Source: Trichosphaerium sp. ATCC 40318
Lineage: Eukaryota; Protista; Tubulinea
Assembly (NCBI GenBank): GCA_038496445.1
Contig: JALMLS010000562.1
Location: 186,001-250,000, forward strand
Direction: 5' to 3'
Length of the DNA stretch: 64,000 bases
Position numbers and translations under genes: made by a program. The notes beneath the pieces were generated by a model, which worked only from the letters and a program-made list of their open reading frames with translations, was not told the origin of the DNA and ran no database searches. This document shows, piece by piece, positions 24,021 to 34,145 of this stretch (positions are counted from its first letter, which is position 1; every line of letters begins with the position of its first letter).

Positions 24021-26579
24021 TCAAGCTTCAGCATTAAGGTCTCCTCGAACAATTTCTACTTTAGGAGCAAATTGCCATACAATATACTTGTTGTCTCCAT
24101 TGCCTGCAAACGCTGTTCGCATGTTAACATCCTCTCCTTGATTGTATAGAAGTGGTTGATGACTTTTCAAGAACTCATTTACAGTCACCTCCATACCAAG
24201 CTCAGGTATGCACACTCTGTAAATTTGCCTCGAAGCAGCTCTATGAAATTGGTCACTTCGTGGTTGGTAAGCCATAATAACAACTCCATCATAATTTCTA
24301 TCAACAACAATGACTGAGTTTTTCCATTGGTTCTCTAACGCACGTAATTAATAGGCGGCTTTGTAAAGTTACTTTGCGCTGAAACGTACCACAGACACGT
24401 TGAATATTGCGCACATGGCGATCTCGGACATCAAGCCAAGGAAGGGTATGTGAAAGCACAGCATTGCTGAAAGGATACTGAACATCACCTGCAGTGTTAA
24501 GCTGCTTATGCCTCATGTGTGCCTTGATATTTACGTGTGCCAAATAATCTGCAAAACGGCGAATAGGAGAAGTAACACGAACGTAATTCGGCAAATTCAT
24601 AGAATGATGCTTACTCACATCGTTGTCGTGACGTGCACGCCTTTAAAAAATACTAGTTAAACAACAGACGATCAAAGTTTAGCGTTAACGTACTGCATGT
24701 ATTGCATACTCATAGAGGAATAAACCCAAGGATGTTGATCAGTTGGAACCTTCTCGTAGCCTTCTAGAGGTTCATCTTGTACTCTGTATGGTACAGGAAC
24801 TTTATTACGCACTGCATAAGTTCCTGCAATCTCACCAGCAACTATCATCAATTCTTGAACAAGCAGTTGTGATAGAGGATAGGTTTCTGTGGTCAATGAA
24901 ACAGTGCCTTGCTCGTTTACAGTTACGCGATGTTTAGGCATGCGTGATTGCTCGGCTTCGTTTCTGAACTTTTTACGCAATTGCGCTACTTGTAGCATGT
25001 AATGAAGAGGTGTATCCTTCTTTTTTGTCAAAATATGTTCAACTTCTTTGTAGGTCATTCTTTTCACTCTAACCTTCGAGCTAGTTATTGCATACTCTTT
25101 AATAGAACCATCAGTATTCAACCGACCAAAGAAAGCAAACGAATTTGAGAAGCCGTTTTCGTCAGCTTTGTCCAATGAAACGGCCTCTACCAGAGCCTTA
25201 GGTAGCATAGGCACAGCACCATCAGGTTTGTAAACGGTTGATATACGGTTTTCACCAAGCCAACTGTCTTTGGGCTTCATTACGCGCTCTAAGTCTGCTA
25301 CGTGTATGTGTACCCAGAAATTACCGTGTTTGTCAAATCTACATCCTACGGCATCATCTACTTCTGATGTATCAGGAGAATCAATGGCGAAAACTGTTTC
25401 ATCAAGCTTGACACGTGGCAGTGGATCTGCTTTTTCATTCTTGTTAATTTCCGATAACATTCTTTCAGCTGTATCCTGCTCTGTTATTGTTGTAGGTGAC
25501 AGCGTAGCTGGTATAGGTCTAACAAGGTGGGGTGGTCCAGCCAAGAAGCTTTTTTGATTCTTCATCTCAATAGCTAGTGGTGGGTTACCTCCAGCAAGCT
25601 CTGGGTAAACTCCTATTTTGACTAGATTCTGGGAAGAAAAAAATAAGAAAATAAATGTAGCTAAATAGTACGTACTTCGAACAGATTGTCATAAAGCAAC
25701 CTCAGTGGTTTGAGTAATTTGCTGAAAATAACCCATGGTATTGTTTGGTTAGGATCAAGCTCTGCTACATACTTTAAGGTGTCAATATATACACGCATTT
25801 CTGGGTTAACTTTATTGCCAGAACGCCAATGACCTGGTTTTGAGCCTCTAAAGCGCCACCAACCAATAAATTTCTGTAATCCAGCGCTGTCATTCATTGC
25901 TTTCATAATCTGTAAGCGTCTTTGGCTCTCTTCACTGGACACAGGACACCATATGTCGCGCTCAGTCGGATTAAAGTATACCCAATTGTATGACATGATT
26001 CTATTTGACACAATACGCCTGTACCTAATTCAAAAGTGAGCGACCCAAACAGGTTTTGTTAACGCACGGGGAGGAAGTGCCACCCCAAATATGCTTCGCA
26101 ATGTCTTCAATATTATGAGCAGGTTTTGTTCTCAGAGCCTCCCAAAGATCTACTGGCTTTACAAACTGTGGAGGTTTTGGTAAACTTTTGAAATACCCTG
26201 CCAGGTCACTTGTCTACAAGAGAGATAAGCAAAGGACTAAAATGGTTCGAACTAACCTTATCAACGATTGCTGATTTATGCTTTACTGTAGAGTTGGTGT
26301 TTAAACTTAACTGTTTACCGTCAAATGCTACAAAGTGATGCCATGTATCGTCTGTTTCTATAACGCGTGCTAGTTTTCTGTGACAATTAACAATACATAG
26401 GTGATCAATATTACGCACTCGCGGTACGATTGATGGAACTGAGTCATTACAACAATTTCGTTTATCTTCGGTCTGCTTGTATCTTGAATAGGCAGCGTAT
26501 ATTTGGTTCTTACGCTACGTGCTTGTTCTCTACGCTGCGCAATAGCGCTTGTGCGTAGACGGCTGCCAATACGTAACAT
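24021..26579 (-). CDS. RNase II/RNB-family exoribonuclease, probably mitochondrial (Dss1-like)
   Basis: FAIDSPDTSEVDDA, VHIHVAD, STVYKPDGAVPMLP, LVQELMI and YVRVTSPIRRFADYLAH. Presequence-like MLRIGSRLRTSAIAQRR. Confidence 0.9.
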
Positions 26580-27549: not shown

Positions 27550-28569
27550 ATGCCTAAAGTCAGTTCGTTGCGTAGACGTACGTGCCATTTGGAGTATAAC
27601 TGGCCATGTTATGGCGTAGTTCCAGCGTTTTTCTCCTTGTTTGTGTCATCTCGTAGCTGATCGTTTTTCTAGGCTCCAAAGTATCAAAGACGCCCCTCCG
27701 TCCATATGAGAAGGAGCGACTCGACTCAGAAATGAAGCTTCTCGGTCAATACGGCCTAAAGAACAAAAGAGAGATCTGGCGTTTGCAATTAGCTCTTACT
27801 AAGATTCGTCAATCCGCTAGGTAACTAAATTGATTTTTACATCCCTAATACTTACGATCACTTAGAACTTTGCTTACTTTGCAAGAAGACAACCCACGCA
27901 GACAATTAGAGGTATGTTATCGCTCAGGATGTAATACAAGAAAAATTTTGTGTAATTGGCGATATCAGCACGAAATTACCGCTAGCGTTTAAAACGCGAA
28001 CACGCTGGCGCCTTGCCAAACTTTCTTTCGTTTTTCGCTTTTCGCGTCAATAGGCCCAAATCGTGGTTATTTTCACCACCAAAGCCTTTTTCGCTTCAAG
28101 TATTGATAAAACACTGCCTGTCATACAATTTTTTTGTACTATGATCACAAAATTAATAATTTTCTGTAGGGATCTGCTCTTATCCGCAGACTTCACCGTT
28201 ATGGAATCCTTGATGAAGACAGAGATCAATTAGATTACGTACTAGCCCTCAAAATTGAGAACTTGTTGGAGCGTCGCCTTCAAACACTCGTTGCCAAAAG
28301 ACACGCCAAATCGTTCCACCACGCGCGTTGCTTGGTTATCCAAAAACACATCAGGTACGCTAAATTAATGAGCTGTTAATAGAATTTTTTTTTTCTGACT
28401 CGTAAATTTTAGAGTTGGTAAACAAATTGTTGACGTACCATCATTTTTGGTCCGTGTTGACTCTGAGAAACACATTGATTACTCCCTAACCAGCTCCTTG
28501 TCTGGTGGACCACCTGGCCGTGTCAAGAAACGAAAACTTAAATCTGCTGGCGGCAATGATGAAGAGTAA
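27550..28569 (+). CDS. RPS9: 40S ribosomal protein S9 (uS4)
   Basis: [39 protein letters not shown] and [15 protein letters not shown]. Four introns; the third spans 27912-28169. Confidence 0.97.
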
Positions 28570-28759
28570 ACAAAATATATCAAAAAAACAAACTCCTTGT
28601 AATATTCACGCTTGATTCTCTCCCGCACTTTCTATGCGTGTAGATTTTATAAAGTACTGAGCGGACAAATTAGTTTGCTGTTACATTTATACTCCATAGC
28701 GACTTTGTTCAAGTGTTTGGTTTTTATTCAAATTTTTTCTGTGATTATGCTTGTGAGCG

Positions 28760-30121
28760 TTAATCCGCTGACACTACAGCCATTTTTATACCCTCTTTGC
28801 TCACGCTGTAATAATACGTGAGAGGACGGCTTAGTTAGTAACACTTGCCTGTACGTTGTGTAGAAGCGTCCATTGTACGCCATTGTGGTCGGATAGGAAT
28901 AACTACCGATCAAGTCTGGCTCCAGATAAGCGTAGTAGTTCCATGATTTCCCGTTGTCTTTTGATAAAGATAGCTCCAGTGGAGCGCGCTCTATAGTGGA
29001 TGGATTGTAAGCGAGCACGAGCTCCTTATTGTACGACATTAAGAAAATCTTAAGATAGAGTAAGTGGTAGTTTTGGGTTTAAAGCAAACCTTCGAATCCG
29101 GATTCAAAAGTAATAGCTCTGATGCTGGCGTCCACTTGTTACCATTGTCACTTGACGTACTATGCCAGATATGTCCCACTTTAGTACGAAACATTTGGTG
29201 TATAACGCCATCTGACGTTTGTGCTAGAGTGTTTTCTATCAACCACCCTGCCTGATCTTTTCTTAGTCTCAACAATAAAAAACTTTTAGAAGGTACCTTG
29301 TCCGAGTGAATACAATCACGAAGTGACCATGTTTTTCCGTTGTCATCTGATACAAGTACGTCAGAACACGGTAGTCCGGTGTCTGATACTTGGTGCTTCT
29401 CTTGCCAAAATGGTAATAACCAGCGCCCTTGACTAATGTCAGAGGTGCCTCATGTTTATAATTTTACCTGTGTTGGTTATTACGAGTTTGTTCGCTGTTA
29501 CTTTGGAGATATTGCCATGTTGATAGTATGTCAGAAGTGTAGTACGCTCATCCCAAGTGAGTCCAAAATCTTTTGAAGTTATGTATTTTATGTCGCCACC
29601 TGGCCATGATCTTCCAGGCTCTCTACGGTTAAACGGCCCTGATTCTGCAAAAAACAACCACAACACTTTCATTTTAGCGTCAAAATGCAGTACAGGTCCC
29701 CATAGAGCCTTTTGCAGTTGTTAGGAATAAAAACCTCTGATATGAGATACCTGAGGGCCATTTACGATAATTTTGGCATCACTCCACGTGTTTCCACCTA
29801 AAATAAGCGTTTTAAATCTTTTTTATAATTTTCAGTTATGTACCATCTTCTGATTTAGTAAAGTGAATTGCCTGGTCGTCAGCACCTAAAACAGTATGTA
29901 AAGCGTATCAACAATCTACTTTACAAACCTTCCTGGTCTTTACTAGCTTGGAAAGCCACCCAGAAAGTTCCATTTGGAGATGGCTCGATTGTGCTCATGT
30001 GACTGTAGCCAATTTCAGCCGTTTCGTTAAATATAAAATGATATTGCACTGGCACTGATAATGCGTTGCTGTGATAACATATATAAACAATTATTAAAAG
30101 AAGGTAAGCTGCCCTTGTCAT
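28760..30121 (-). CDS. Secreted BNR/Asp-box beta-propeller (sialidase-like)
   Basis: Signal peptide and five Asp boxes (SEDGGNTW, SKDFGLTW, SDDNGKTW, SSDNGNKW, SKDNGKSW), plus R.PL and YSYP motifs. The last intron is GC-AG. Confidence 0.85.
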
Positions 30122-30721: not shown

Positions 30722-33700
30722 TTAATTTCTATGAGAACCGACTGCAAATCTGTAATTAACTGGTGTTTCAGCGTAATCAGAACTTGATAAGATACTGCTA
30801 TCATCTGAATCGTCGGTGCTTGTGTGCTGTTGTTCAATCATGTCATCAACAGTTAGCGACAATTCTTTCGGTCTACTAGTGAGTGTGCCTCCTGCTGTTA
30901 GGCTGCCGTCTAGTGATGTTGGTTTCTATGTCTTGTAAGTACCAGTAAATAACTTAGTATGTACATACACTAGGAATATCAGGGCTAAGCGGTGTAGGTC
31001 CAGTTTGAGTTTCAGATATTGATGACTGAGTGTAATCATCACTAGGTTTTTTAAATCAAACGCAAAGTATCATTTACTATGTACCTTGGGGTTTCTGAGG
31101 AGTCTTCATCATCGCTTTCACTAAAACTAGAGCTGGAGTAACTCGTTTCCTGTAGAGGACTATTTTGAGATGTCTCTGTGCCGTCATATTCGCTTGAAGA
31201 TACATCGTCGCTCTATTAGGAATGTTACACTGCTTTAAAGGTAGGTTTGGCACACGTACGTCTGATGAGAAAGATGAGCTTGCAAATGATTCTGAATAGG
31301 CACCAGTTTCTTTTTCTTGCCCACTTGCTTTGTGTTGTTGAGCACGGTAAGGTTCTGGTTGCATTTCCCAATTCCTCTTTTTTTCTGCTTTTTCATGTTT
31401 TCTCCCATCGCAATATAGAGCAATAGCAATGATTATTAAGAGTATAGCAACACCACCACAAGCTATAGCGATTATGACACCAATACTATTCAATAGTTAT
31501 TGATAATGTACTACGCAGGATGCGCTTACCTTAGGCCACCATCAGGAGGAGCACTTGTTGGTAGTACAAACGGACCTCCTTCTTTGACTCCCGCTGTGGT
31601 GAAATTAAAACAAACTTTTGGGTGGACTTGAAGTACTTGCCTACAGGAACAAGAGTCGGTTCTTGTGTTACTATTCCTCCAATTTCAGTCTCGATAGACC
31701 GTTTTATTTGGTCTCGTAATGCCGTATCAGCGAAATAAGTTGCCACAGCGGCTGTAAATCTCGGTAAGTTTAAATAGTAGCGTAAAACTATGACTGTACT
31801 TGGGTTATCAGTGATCTCTACTGATAGGGTTATTGTTTGTTGTCTCTTCCTTTGAACGTCTTGAGTCACATTAACAGAGTTGGCATCAATACTTAGTGCT
31901 GATACAAATATTTGTGCTATGGCACCAAGGTTTTCGCTTGATAACACCGGGCTCCTAACCTCTAAATAATCTATGAACACAAATACATAATATCGTAAGA
32001 ACATACGTATTTCGATGACTGAGCTGTCAGGACATGCACTATCAGTATTCGTCGCTCTAACAGCACTTTCAAACAAGTTCCAACGAAGATTTTCACCAGC
32101 TTTAAATTTAACCTATCACGTGATTAAACTCGTTGGGTTTAGTTTTTTCTTTGTACCTTAAAGGCACAGATTGGATACGACAGCGACTCGCTTTGGTTAA
32201 ATTGAGTTATCACTGCGTCTTTATATATAGCGGGTTCAACTGTATTAGTAGTACCTTCATCAAGTTAGTTGTTTTAATCCTTCAATCAATAACGTACCTT
32301 GTTGAACAACAGTATCGGGGCCTTGCTTGCGGTATCCAAAACAAGCTTCAAACTCTACAACAAAGTTGTAAACACCAAAAAAGAAACCTTATGTAAATGC
32401 GGTATACGAAACGCACCATCAGATGGCAGTGTTTTGACACAATACAAAAGTGTAGTGAATGTAGTAACACTACTTGTAGGTCCTAATTTTGAGATTAGAC
32501 AGATGTTGTATGATGATAACCTCACCCATTACTGGTGGGGTTGCTGTTGGTCCAATTGGAGGAAATGTAGGCTCGGAAGTTGGTGCAACCGTAGTTGGTG
32601 CGCTCGTTACATTTACAGGTAGTGTGGGAGCATCGGTCATATTCGTAGCCATAGTAGGTGGTTCGGTTGTGTTTGCAGGCATAGTCGGAGCATCAGTTGC
32701 ATTCGCAGGTAAAGTGGGTGCATCAGTTGCGTTTGCAGGCATAGTCGGAGCAACAGTCACGTTCGATTGTGTTGTGGGCGGATCAGTAGTGTTTGTAGGT
32801 ATTGGAGGGGCTGTGGTGTTGACAGGTATTGGTGCGTTCGTAGGAGGTTCAGTCCCATTGACGGGTATTGGCGCGTTTGTAGGAGGTTCAGTTACGTTGA
32901 CAGGTATAGGTGCGTTCGTAGGAGGTTCAGTTACGTTGACAGGTATTGGTGCGTTCGTAGGAGGTTCAGTTACGTTGACAGGTGTAGGTGCGTTCGTAGG
33001 AGGTTCAGTTCCATTGACGGGTATTGGCGCGTTTGTAGGAGGTTCAGTTGGTGCGTTTGTAGGAGGTTCAGTTACGTTAATTGGAATAGTTGGTGCCTCA
33101 GTTGTTGGAGCATCCGTTGGCATTGCCGTAGGCATTTCTGTTGGTGCTTCAGTCGTTGGAGCATCTGTTGTCGGTTGATTTGTTGGGGCAACTGTTGGTG
33201 CTTCGGTTGTAGGCATTTCCGTTGGTGCTTCAGTTGTGGGTACTTCTGTTGGCACTCCAGTTGGTGCTTCCGTTGTCGGTTGATTTGTTGGCGCAACTGT
33301 TGGTGCTTCAGTTGTGGGTACTTCTGTTGGCGCTTCAGTTGTTGGTTGATTTGTTGGCGCAACTGTTGGTGCTTCAGTTGTGGGTACTTCTGTTGGTGCT
33401 TCCGTTGTTGGTTGATTTGTTGGCGCAACTGTTGGTGCTTCGGTTGTAGGCATTTCCGTTGGTGCTTCAGTTGTGGGTACTTCTGTTGGAGCTTCAGTTA
33501 GAGCTTCAGTTGGTGCTACTGTTGGTGCTTCTGTTGGCTCACTTGTAGGAGTAACAGTGGGTGGATCTGTCATTGTTGGTGGTTGGGTCATTCCTTCTAC
33601 AGAACGCACGTGTTTTGGCGCTGGTACGAGGTATCTCTTATCGCGTATAAGCGCCGTTTCGAAATCGGCAAAAATAAGTAAAATATGCCATTGATCGCTT

Positions 33701-34145
33701 ATAGTTGGACCTTCGCAGATAAACTGTAATTCACCTCGTGTTTGTGGTGTAGTTGATTGCCTAGAAAAATTAAATCGAAAAATCAGAAAAACTACTTACC
33801 AAGCTTTACCAGAAGCATTTACATCCAGTTTCATCCAACGGTAATTCTCAAGAAACGTCTTAGGCCACGTGGATGGAGGAACAATCGAAATTAGAGATAA
33901 AGGCGTGTCGTCATTATCTACGGTTGAAAACGAAGCGTGACAGTCCTATGTATATTAAAAATCACGTTATTAGATACAGGTGTTCCAAGTCATACATAAA
34001 TAAGGTCACGAGGAAGTCCACAAGTGGTTGTTATGTTTGGGCCATAATACGCATCGATTGTGTAGCTAAAAGACACCTGGCAATTTACGAGTGATAATAT
34101 TGTTATGAGCGTCAAAACGCATACCCGAAGAGCGTTGGGCAGCAT
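30722..34145 (-). CDS. Mucin-like type I membrane glycoprotein
   Basis: Signal peptide (MLPNALRVCVLTLITILSLVNC), Pro/Thr repeat stalk, TM helix IGVIIAIACGGVAILLIIIAIALYC and a Ser/acidic cytoplasmic tail. Confidence 0.8.
32530..33590 (-). repeat. Coding tandem repeats (TEAP/TEVP, TNQP and 39-bp TEPPTNAPIPVNx units)
   Basis: Repeated ggtgcttcagttgt and ggtgcgttcgtaggaggttcagttacgttgaca units on the + strand. Confidence 0.95.

Follow-up and report, generated by a model that had tools for sequence, protein, structure and literature searches.

A long, structured intron in the RPS9 gene of Trichosphaerium sp. ATCC 40318 is a candidate for splicing feedback and bears a short likeness to 18S rRNA

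In yeasts, flies, worms, and mammals, ribosomal proteins are documented to feed back on how their own messages are spliced; we know of no documented case in amoebae, and to our knowledge the RNA element that is recognized by eukaryotic uS4 is still poorly defined. Rps9 (uS4) feeds back on its own splicing in both yeast and Drosophila, and RPS9 introns contain conserved structures (PMC3315480). In yeast, the RPS9A intron contains a structured stem with which Rps9 associates and which the authors liken to the protein's binding site in 18S rRNA (PMC4856989), and the yeast RPS9 intron stems covary and raise the fraction of retained intron (PMC12350175). Binding of bacterial S4 needs helices 3, 4, and 16 together with junction bases, and truncation of helix 16 cuts binding >380-fold (PMC2665224); autoregulation by another ribosomal protein, uL1, is conserved (PMC4937301). 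A first-pass annotation of the locus described here had stated that RPS9 regulates itself through its introns in yeast and flies, and the literature agrees (PMC3315480, PMC4856989).

The window, the 64,000-nt stretch of Trichosphaerium sp. ATCC 40318 DNA that was analyzed, contains an RPS9/uS4 gene at 27550-28569 on the forward strand, organized in five exons that are defined by spliced RNA contigs assembled from four public runs of four studies. Exon 1 (27550..27577) starts with the ATG at 27550 and is joined to exon 2 (27673..27820) by contigs of all four runs, which remove the 95-nt intron 1 (joint 27577 to 27673). Exon 3 is 46 nt long (27866..27911) and follows the 45-nt intron 2 (joint 27820 to 27866), and exon 4 (28170..28354) and exon 5 (28413..28569, with the TAA at its end) flank the 58-nt intron 4 (joint 28354 to 28413), with all of these joints present in RNA contigs. 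Exon peptides were searched separately and not as one spliced protein, and those of exons 2 and 4 match uS4 chains in the PDB with E values of 1e-18 (exon 2) to 4e-20. Intron 3 (27912..28169, GT..AG) is three to six times the length of the gene's other introns (95, 45, and 58 nt), and its description as a 258-nt intron that is oversized relative to its neighbors is borne out by the RNA, since contigs of all four runs remove it cleanly at exactly these ends (joint 27911 to 28170). It closes with a branch-like TTAAT, a pyrimidine run, and the acceptor AG (28153..28169), as judged by inspection of the sequence and the RNA joints.

The surroundings of RPS9 have several features of their own. Just downstream is a BNR/sialidase-like multi-exon gene on the reverse strand (28728-30121; Pfam BNR_2, E 2e-8), and an exon of an RNB-domain exoribonuclease is nearby on the same strand (24672-25565; E 5e-33). 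Farther along the window, 32001-34000 is the only 2-kb block with a strong strand asymmetry (GC 0.446, GC skew +0.23, AT skew -0.18) and contains long ORFs that overlap on both strands (32470-33609); its appearance suggests low-complexity or repeat-coding sequence.

A single contig of run X1 (27883-28197) keeps intron 3 whole, at a depth of 3.5 compared with 200-300 for the spliced form, so that the retaining transcript amounts to ~1-2% of spliced depth in this one of the four runs, contigs as such giving no rates. Introns 1, 2, and 4 have zero depth in X1 and intron 3 is the only one with a retention contig, which argues that the contig is not DNA carry-over. With the reading frame fixed by the RNA joints, a transcript that retains intron 3 reaches its first in-frame stop, a TAA at 27990..27992, after 27 codons. 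Contigs of the four runs contain no alternative splice joint of intron 3, contigs being an assembly product that drops rare forms.

Four further observations concern these RNA data and the layout of the intron. The retaining contig has a G in place of the window's A at 27984, which keeps a pair of the second predicted hairpin (A-U to G.U); this is either a strain difference or editing and, as a single event, proves nothing. X1 has a second low-depth contig that is ~90% identical to exon 4 only (28174-28354), and a contig of run X7 links 27775 with 28188 at non-canonical ends; the probable source of both is a related organism or a paralogue in the samples. Intron 3 could also be composite, with a 27-nt pyrimidine tract leading to an AG at 28052-28053 and a donor-like GTATTG at 28100, such that 28054-28099 could be a 46-nt frameshifting cassette followed by a 70-nt mini-intron; the RNA contigs contain none of the joints of this putative cassette.

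The 5' part of intron 3 is predicted to fold over its own donor. The pairing of TGTTATCGCT (27915-27924) with GGCGATATCA (27958-27967) that the first-pass annotation had described is recovered in the predicted fold at 9 of the 10 positions (8 Watson-Crick pairs and 1 G.U, with one U x U mismatch), as is the AU-rich hairpin that it encloses, which pairs AUACAAGA with UUUUGUGU (27934-27941 / 27946-27953). The outer helix extends to G27912-C27969, and the whole GUAUGU donor therefore lies inside the predicted helix, whose strands, taken from the pair list and energy of the fold, span 27912..27927 and 27956..27969. The inner hairpin (27934..27953, loop AAAA) has a predicted probability of 0.77-0.82 in its preferred register. 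The 59-nt donor hairpin as a unit has a dG of -14.2 kcal/mol and a z of -2.74 (2/200 shuffles), a value that is reached or surpassed by 2% of random 60-nt segments of the 64,000-nt window. The outer helix has a probability of 0.5-0.7 in two flank contexts, and other pairings replace it when the intron is folded alone. The mean donor pairing probability is 0.55-0.71 for intron 3 and 0.54-0.99 for the other three donors, and because these pair as much, the donor fold is a real prediction but not distinctive of intron 3; donor occlusion was rejected as a mark of this intron, the gene's other three donors scoring the same or higher.

Downstream of the donor hairpin is a second predicted hairpin with a 9-bp stem (CGCUAGCGU/ACGCUGGCG, 27980..28010, probability 0.8-0.95), then an internal pyrimidine tract (28021..28047), which pairs with purine-rich exon 2 in folds although not above shuffles, and a third hairpin (28044..28094) built of GCG / AGGC / GUGGU tiers, with a z of -3.55 (0/200 shuffles; z -3.3 in a scan of the window). 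The fold of the whole intron is not unusual (z -1.15), and two of ~22 overlapping intron 3 segments are in the lowest 2% of the background, which is a mild excess; beyond chance, the predicted structure of the intron is modest. Exon 2 (27745-27780) is complementary to the middle of intron 3 (28015-28107) in four blocks that are collinear (GCCA, a run of 15 pyrimidines, TAGGCC, and GTATTGAT), and this pairing has a probability of 0.95 in the full pre-mRNA fold, but it was set aside as not significant, its score being reached by 39/1000 shuffles of exon 2 and by 138/1000 when any exon is allowed.

The likeness of the intron to 18S rRNA was assessed with a comparator (L081) that is yeast-type rDNA (GC 40-47%, 9.3-kb contig) contaminating a bacterial assembly and not this organism's own 18S, which is absent from the window and was not found in a scan of viral contigs. 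Helices were assigned by aligning L081 to Rfam RF01960 (eukaryotic SSU). The rDNA contigs were located by a pattern based on the 18S motif that the first-pass annotation had named, and within the set L081-L159, some members of which may be human rDNA, only L081 was read and compared, with only GC computed for L092. That set is itself an observation about public assemblies: at least 79 contigs (L081-L159) of genomes labeled as bacterial or archaeal contain 18S rDNA of eukaryotes, i.e., assembly contamination; among them are ~9.2-kb rDNA units of yeast size and numerous 7,682-nt contigs from unrelated "NPDC" actinomycete assemblies.

The match between intron and 18S is 5 + 9 nt only, a bipartite motif of ATACA at 27934-27938 and TGTAATTGG at 27951..27959, the latter found by motif search and identical over 9 nt to the 3' strand and exit of helix 16 in yeast-type 18S. 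AAATTACC is present at 27973..27980, as annotated, and by the RF01960 alignment is identical to an 18S junction together with the helix 15 entry; pairing is possible between its UACC and GGUA at the donor. The 18S strings that the first-pass annotation had cited do occur in the real yeast-type gene, but their helix assignments do not hold, both labels being off by one. ATACA...TGTAATTGG, taken for the base of helix 17, is placed by RF01960 at the base of helix 16, CGAUACAGGGCCC-AUUC-GGGUCUUGUA(A)UUG being helix 16 because it comes first among three hairpins located ahead of the closure of helix 3. AAAUUACCC, taken for the entry to helix 16, is the junction and 5' strand of the preceding hairpin (helix 15) and is separated from helix 16 in 18S by the 3' strand of a long-range helix. 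The second motif (AAAUUACC; AAATTACC in the intron) is outside the uS4 five-way junction in RF01960, and it follows the hairpin in the intron but precedes helix 16 in 18S. The sequence of helix 16 is variable among eukaryotes, as it is in lower case in the Rfam consensus (cgaugcggg...cccgcaAucgg), whereas the GAAUGA junction after helix 16 is in upper case (conserved), and the intron has CGAUAU there.

The string ATACA-N(4-34)-TGTAATTGG is expected 0.03 times per window on both strands and is seen once, in RPS9 intron 3; the expectation for TGTAATTGG by itself is 0.79 per window, and the motif was a post hoc choice. When the intron is aligned locally and without bias to the whole yeast-type 18S, 273/300 dinucleotide shuffles score as high or higher, and for the five-way-junction region, where the best match is the 9-mer TGTAATTGG, 109/300 do. 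Taking into account that helices 16-18 offer ~30-35 paired positions and that the motif may be split in different ways, we estimate the chance probability of the 18S match at roughly 0.003-0.03, which is suggestive. The 18S-like register would pair as U.G, A-U, A-U, bulged A, U-A, A-U, C-G, A-U; its bulged A has the same location as the one in helix 16 of yeast-type 18S. Alone it has an energy of -0.3 to +0.9 kcal/mol, and it lies +6.6 kcal/mol above the free ensemble with a population of ~2e-5; in the preferred register the partner of AUACA is instead UGUGU, which lies two nucleotides upstream. The cost of shifting into the 18S-like register would fall on a protein, and because the donor-covering helix forms in both registers, binding would add stability and not switch the donor on or off.

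Searches for conservation reached only distant RPS9 genes. A metagenome scan yielded 80 RPS9 loci with 51-69% identity (mostly ~69%), probably largely fungal; TGTAATTGG is in none of these 80 loci of other eukaryotes, an intron at the intron 3 position is absent from 66, and none of the motifs occurs in the few loci whose intron is at this position or adjacent to it. Among soil-metagenome sequences, two RPS9 genes (L017 and L024), with six more one base off (L022 and L069-L073), have a 50-130-nt intron at or next to the intron 3 position (...LFE|G...), which may be old or recurrent. Word searches with exons 4 and 5 for close relatives gave only proteins that are 60-75% identical, an exact look-up of five neighboring ORFs had no match in the collection searched, and a profile search reached full-length RPS9s, none closer than ~75% to any exon. 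Contigs P0001, P0011, and P0012 belong to unrelated organisms, and L160 has exons 2-4 fused.

The extra length of intron 3 is not accounted for by a known class of RNA or by a repeat in the collections searched: the intron has no Rfam match on either strand at E <= 10, the whole window has none at gathering scores, and no copy of the intron is present elsewhere in the window. A match to a snoRNA covariance model, named by the first-pass annotation as the alternative, was looked for and none was found. A box C/D snoRNA was rejected with the RUGAUGA (C) and CUGA (D) boxes both absent and no Rfam match, and a box H/ACA snoRNA with AAATTA at 27973 followed by a pocket-less 9-bp hairpin that has no ACA, the ACAs at 28111 and 28125 not being beside a stem.

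We tentatively favor the reading that intron 3 has a regulatory role and limits splicing in a feedback of the RPS9 type; rRNA mimicry is not required for this. The structured 5' part would slow access of U1 and leave a fraction of transcripts unspliced, this fraction would be degraded by nonsense-mediated decay, and excess free uS4 may raise it, by analogy with RPS9 feedback in yeast and flies. Consistent with this are the retention contig, which exists for intron 3 only, and the in-frame TAA at 27990, the z scores of the 5' hairpin (-2.74) and hairpin 3 (-3.55) in an intron that matches no snoRNA, repeat, or Rfam family, and the established precedent of RPS9 feedback through introns in yeast and Drosophila (PMC3315480, PMC4856989, PMC12350175). 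The evidence is offset by the retention being one contig of one run, as a 258-nt intron in a short-intron genome may just splice more slowly, by donor pairing that is not above that of the other three donors and an outer helix that depends on context, and by the whole-intron z of -1.15 and the lack of an alternative joint in the contigs. Because the likeness to 18S extends over few letters and does not rise above chance in an unbiased test, regulation of splicing by the gene's own product is plausible but not proven, and recognition by uS4 of the helix-16-like letters in intron 3 is unlikely.

Almost as likely as a regulatory intron is an ordinary long intron without function, with hairpins such as any 258-nt AT-rich sequence contains and a resemblance to 18S that is an after-the-fact coincidence. 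Folding that is unremarkable over the whole intron (z -1.15) and matched by 2% of background segments fits this account, as do 18S alignments that are not above shuffles (273/300 and 109/300), a 9-mer that is expected 0.79 times per window by itself, ordinary donor pairing, and clean splicing in all four runs. It explains less well why the gene's other introns are 45-95 nt, why a bipartite motif expected 0.03 times per window has its sole match in an intron of the uS4 gene, and why only intron 3 is seen retained. If intron 3 is no regulatory element, it illustrates the ease with which AT-rich introns produce 9-letter matches to rRNA.

It is considerably less probable that the hairpin at 27932-27958 is a full mimic, a copy of the basal part of a helix at the uS4 site of 18S, such that free uS4 would bind it, lock the donor helix, and block or redirect splicing. 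The placement of the bulged A as in helix 16, the 9 consecutive identical letters of the 3' strand, the bipartite motif (expected 0.03 times per window and seen once, here), the yeast RPS9A intron element that is likened to the Rps9 site in 18S (PMC4856989), and the donor-like GTAATA (27931) and GTAATT (27952) within the hairpin are all compatible with such copying. However, the 18S-like register is +6.6 kcal/mol above the ensemble (population ~2e-5), the GAAUGA junction is absent, and the helix 16 letters are variable in the Rfam consensus, the comparator pair AUACA/UGUAAUUGG being yeast-type and not from the organism's own 18S. Moreover, AAATTACC belongs to helix 15 and is in reversed order relative to 18S, bacterial S4 also needs helices 3 and 4 and junction residues (PMC2665224), and TGTAATTGG is in 0/80 RPS9 loci elsewhere, with the few introns at or next to the position lacking the motifs. 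The rRNA-mimic splice switch of the first-pass annotation is partly supported in its principle, with the oversized intron, donor helix, in-frame stop, and one retention contig in its favor, and weakly supported in its mimic, against which stand the 5 + 9 nt extent of the match, the register cost, the missing GAAUGA, and the shuffles. In its mechanistic form, by which an amoebozoan uS4 would sense its own excess by shifting the 5' hairpin to the helix-16-like register with its bulged A, locking the donor, and sending the transcript to decay, the proposal is similarly improbable; if true, it would place the origin or the retention of uS4 feedback by rRNA mimicry well beyond yeasts and animals.

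Slightly more doubtful still is a role of the stems as a splicing aid, in which they would compact the long intron and bring the donor, branch point, and acceptor together as a zipper stem with no protein sensor. The end of exon 3 (27898-27908) is predicted to pair with the acceptor region (28157-28167) with a probability of 0.92 in the exon 3-exon 4 context, three local hairpins occupy ~140 nt of the intron, and functional zipper stems occur widely in yeast introns (PMC12350175). This long-range helix changes with the flanks and is absent in other contexts, it would hinder rather than aid splicing because it covers the acceptor tract, and no significance test was passed. The least probable of these accounts, and a very unlikely one, is that intron 3 gives rise to an undescribed small RNA, either lineage-specific and snoRNA-like or another non-coding RNA. 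Hairpin 3 is the best-supported local structure (z -3.55), but the intron lacks RUGAUGA and CUGA boxes and an H/ACA layout, neither of its strands matches Rfam at E <= 10, and the only contig that covers it has flat depth and runs on into both exons.

If intron 3 is regulatory, as we tentatively favor, the RPS9 circuit would extend to Amoebozoa, and the compact 60-nt hairpin at the donor would be an easy object for binding and probing experiments; the kind of mechanism is already known, so an amoebozoan case would add one more member. Among the described systems, bacterial S4, which represses the alpha operon and binds the five-way junction of 16S rRNA (PMC2665224), belongs to the same family and shares the principle of competition between rRNA and the protein's own mRNA, with helix 16 as a major determinant, but its control is translational and uses a pseudoknot unlike the rRNA site, and its binding needs far more than the 14 letters matched in intron 3. 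In Drosophila and vertebrate RpS9 (PMC3315480), excess protein shifts splicing toward an isoform with a stop, which nonsense-mediated decay removes, and the same principle is proposed here, although in those genes it operates in the last intron, through cassette exons or alternative splice sites, whereas intron 3 shows whole-intron retention only, in one contig. The yeast RPS9A/RPS9B genes are duplicated and have a single 5' intron each, whereas the intron of Trichosphaerium is one of four and mid-gene, and the functional yeast stem is an upper two-way junction known from covariation, mutants, and chromatin pull-down, while intron 3 is known here from sequence and predicted folds. Yeast RPS9A/RPS9B nevertheless share with the Trichosphaerium gene (Plocik & Guthrie 2012, PMC3315480; Petibon et al. 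2016, PMC4856989; Rangan et al. 2025, PMC12350175) the same protein, uS4, a structured element in an intron of its own message, and a premature stop if that intron is left unspliced, and the conserved yeast stems are near the 5' splice site, where intron 3 likewise has its predicted hairpin at the donor.
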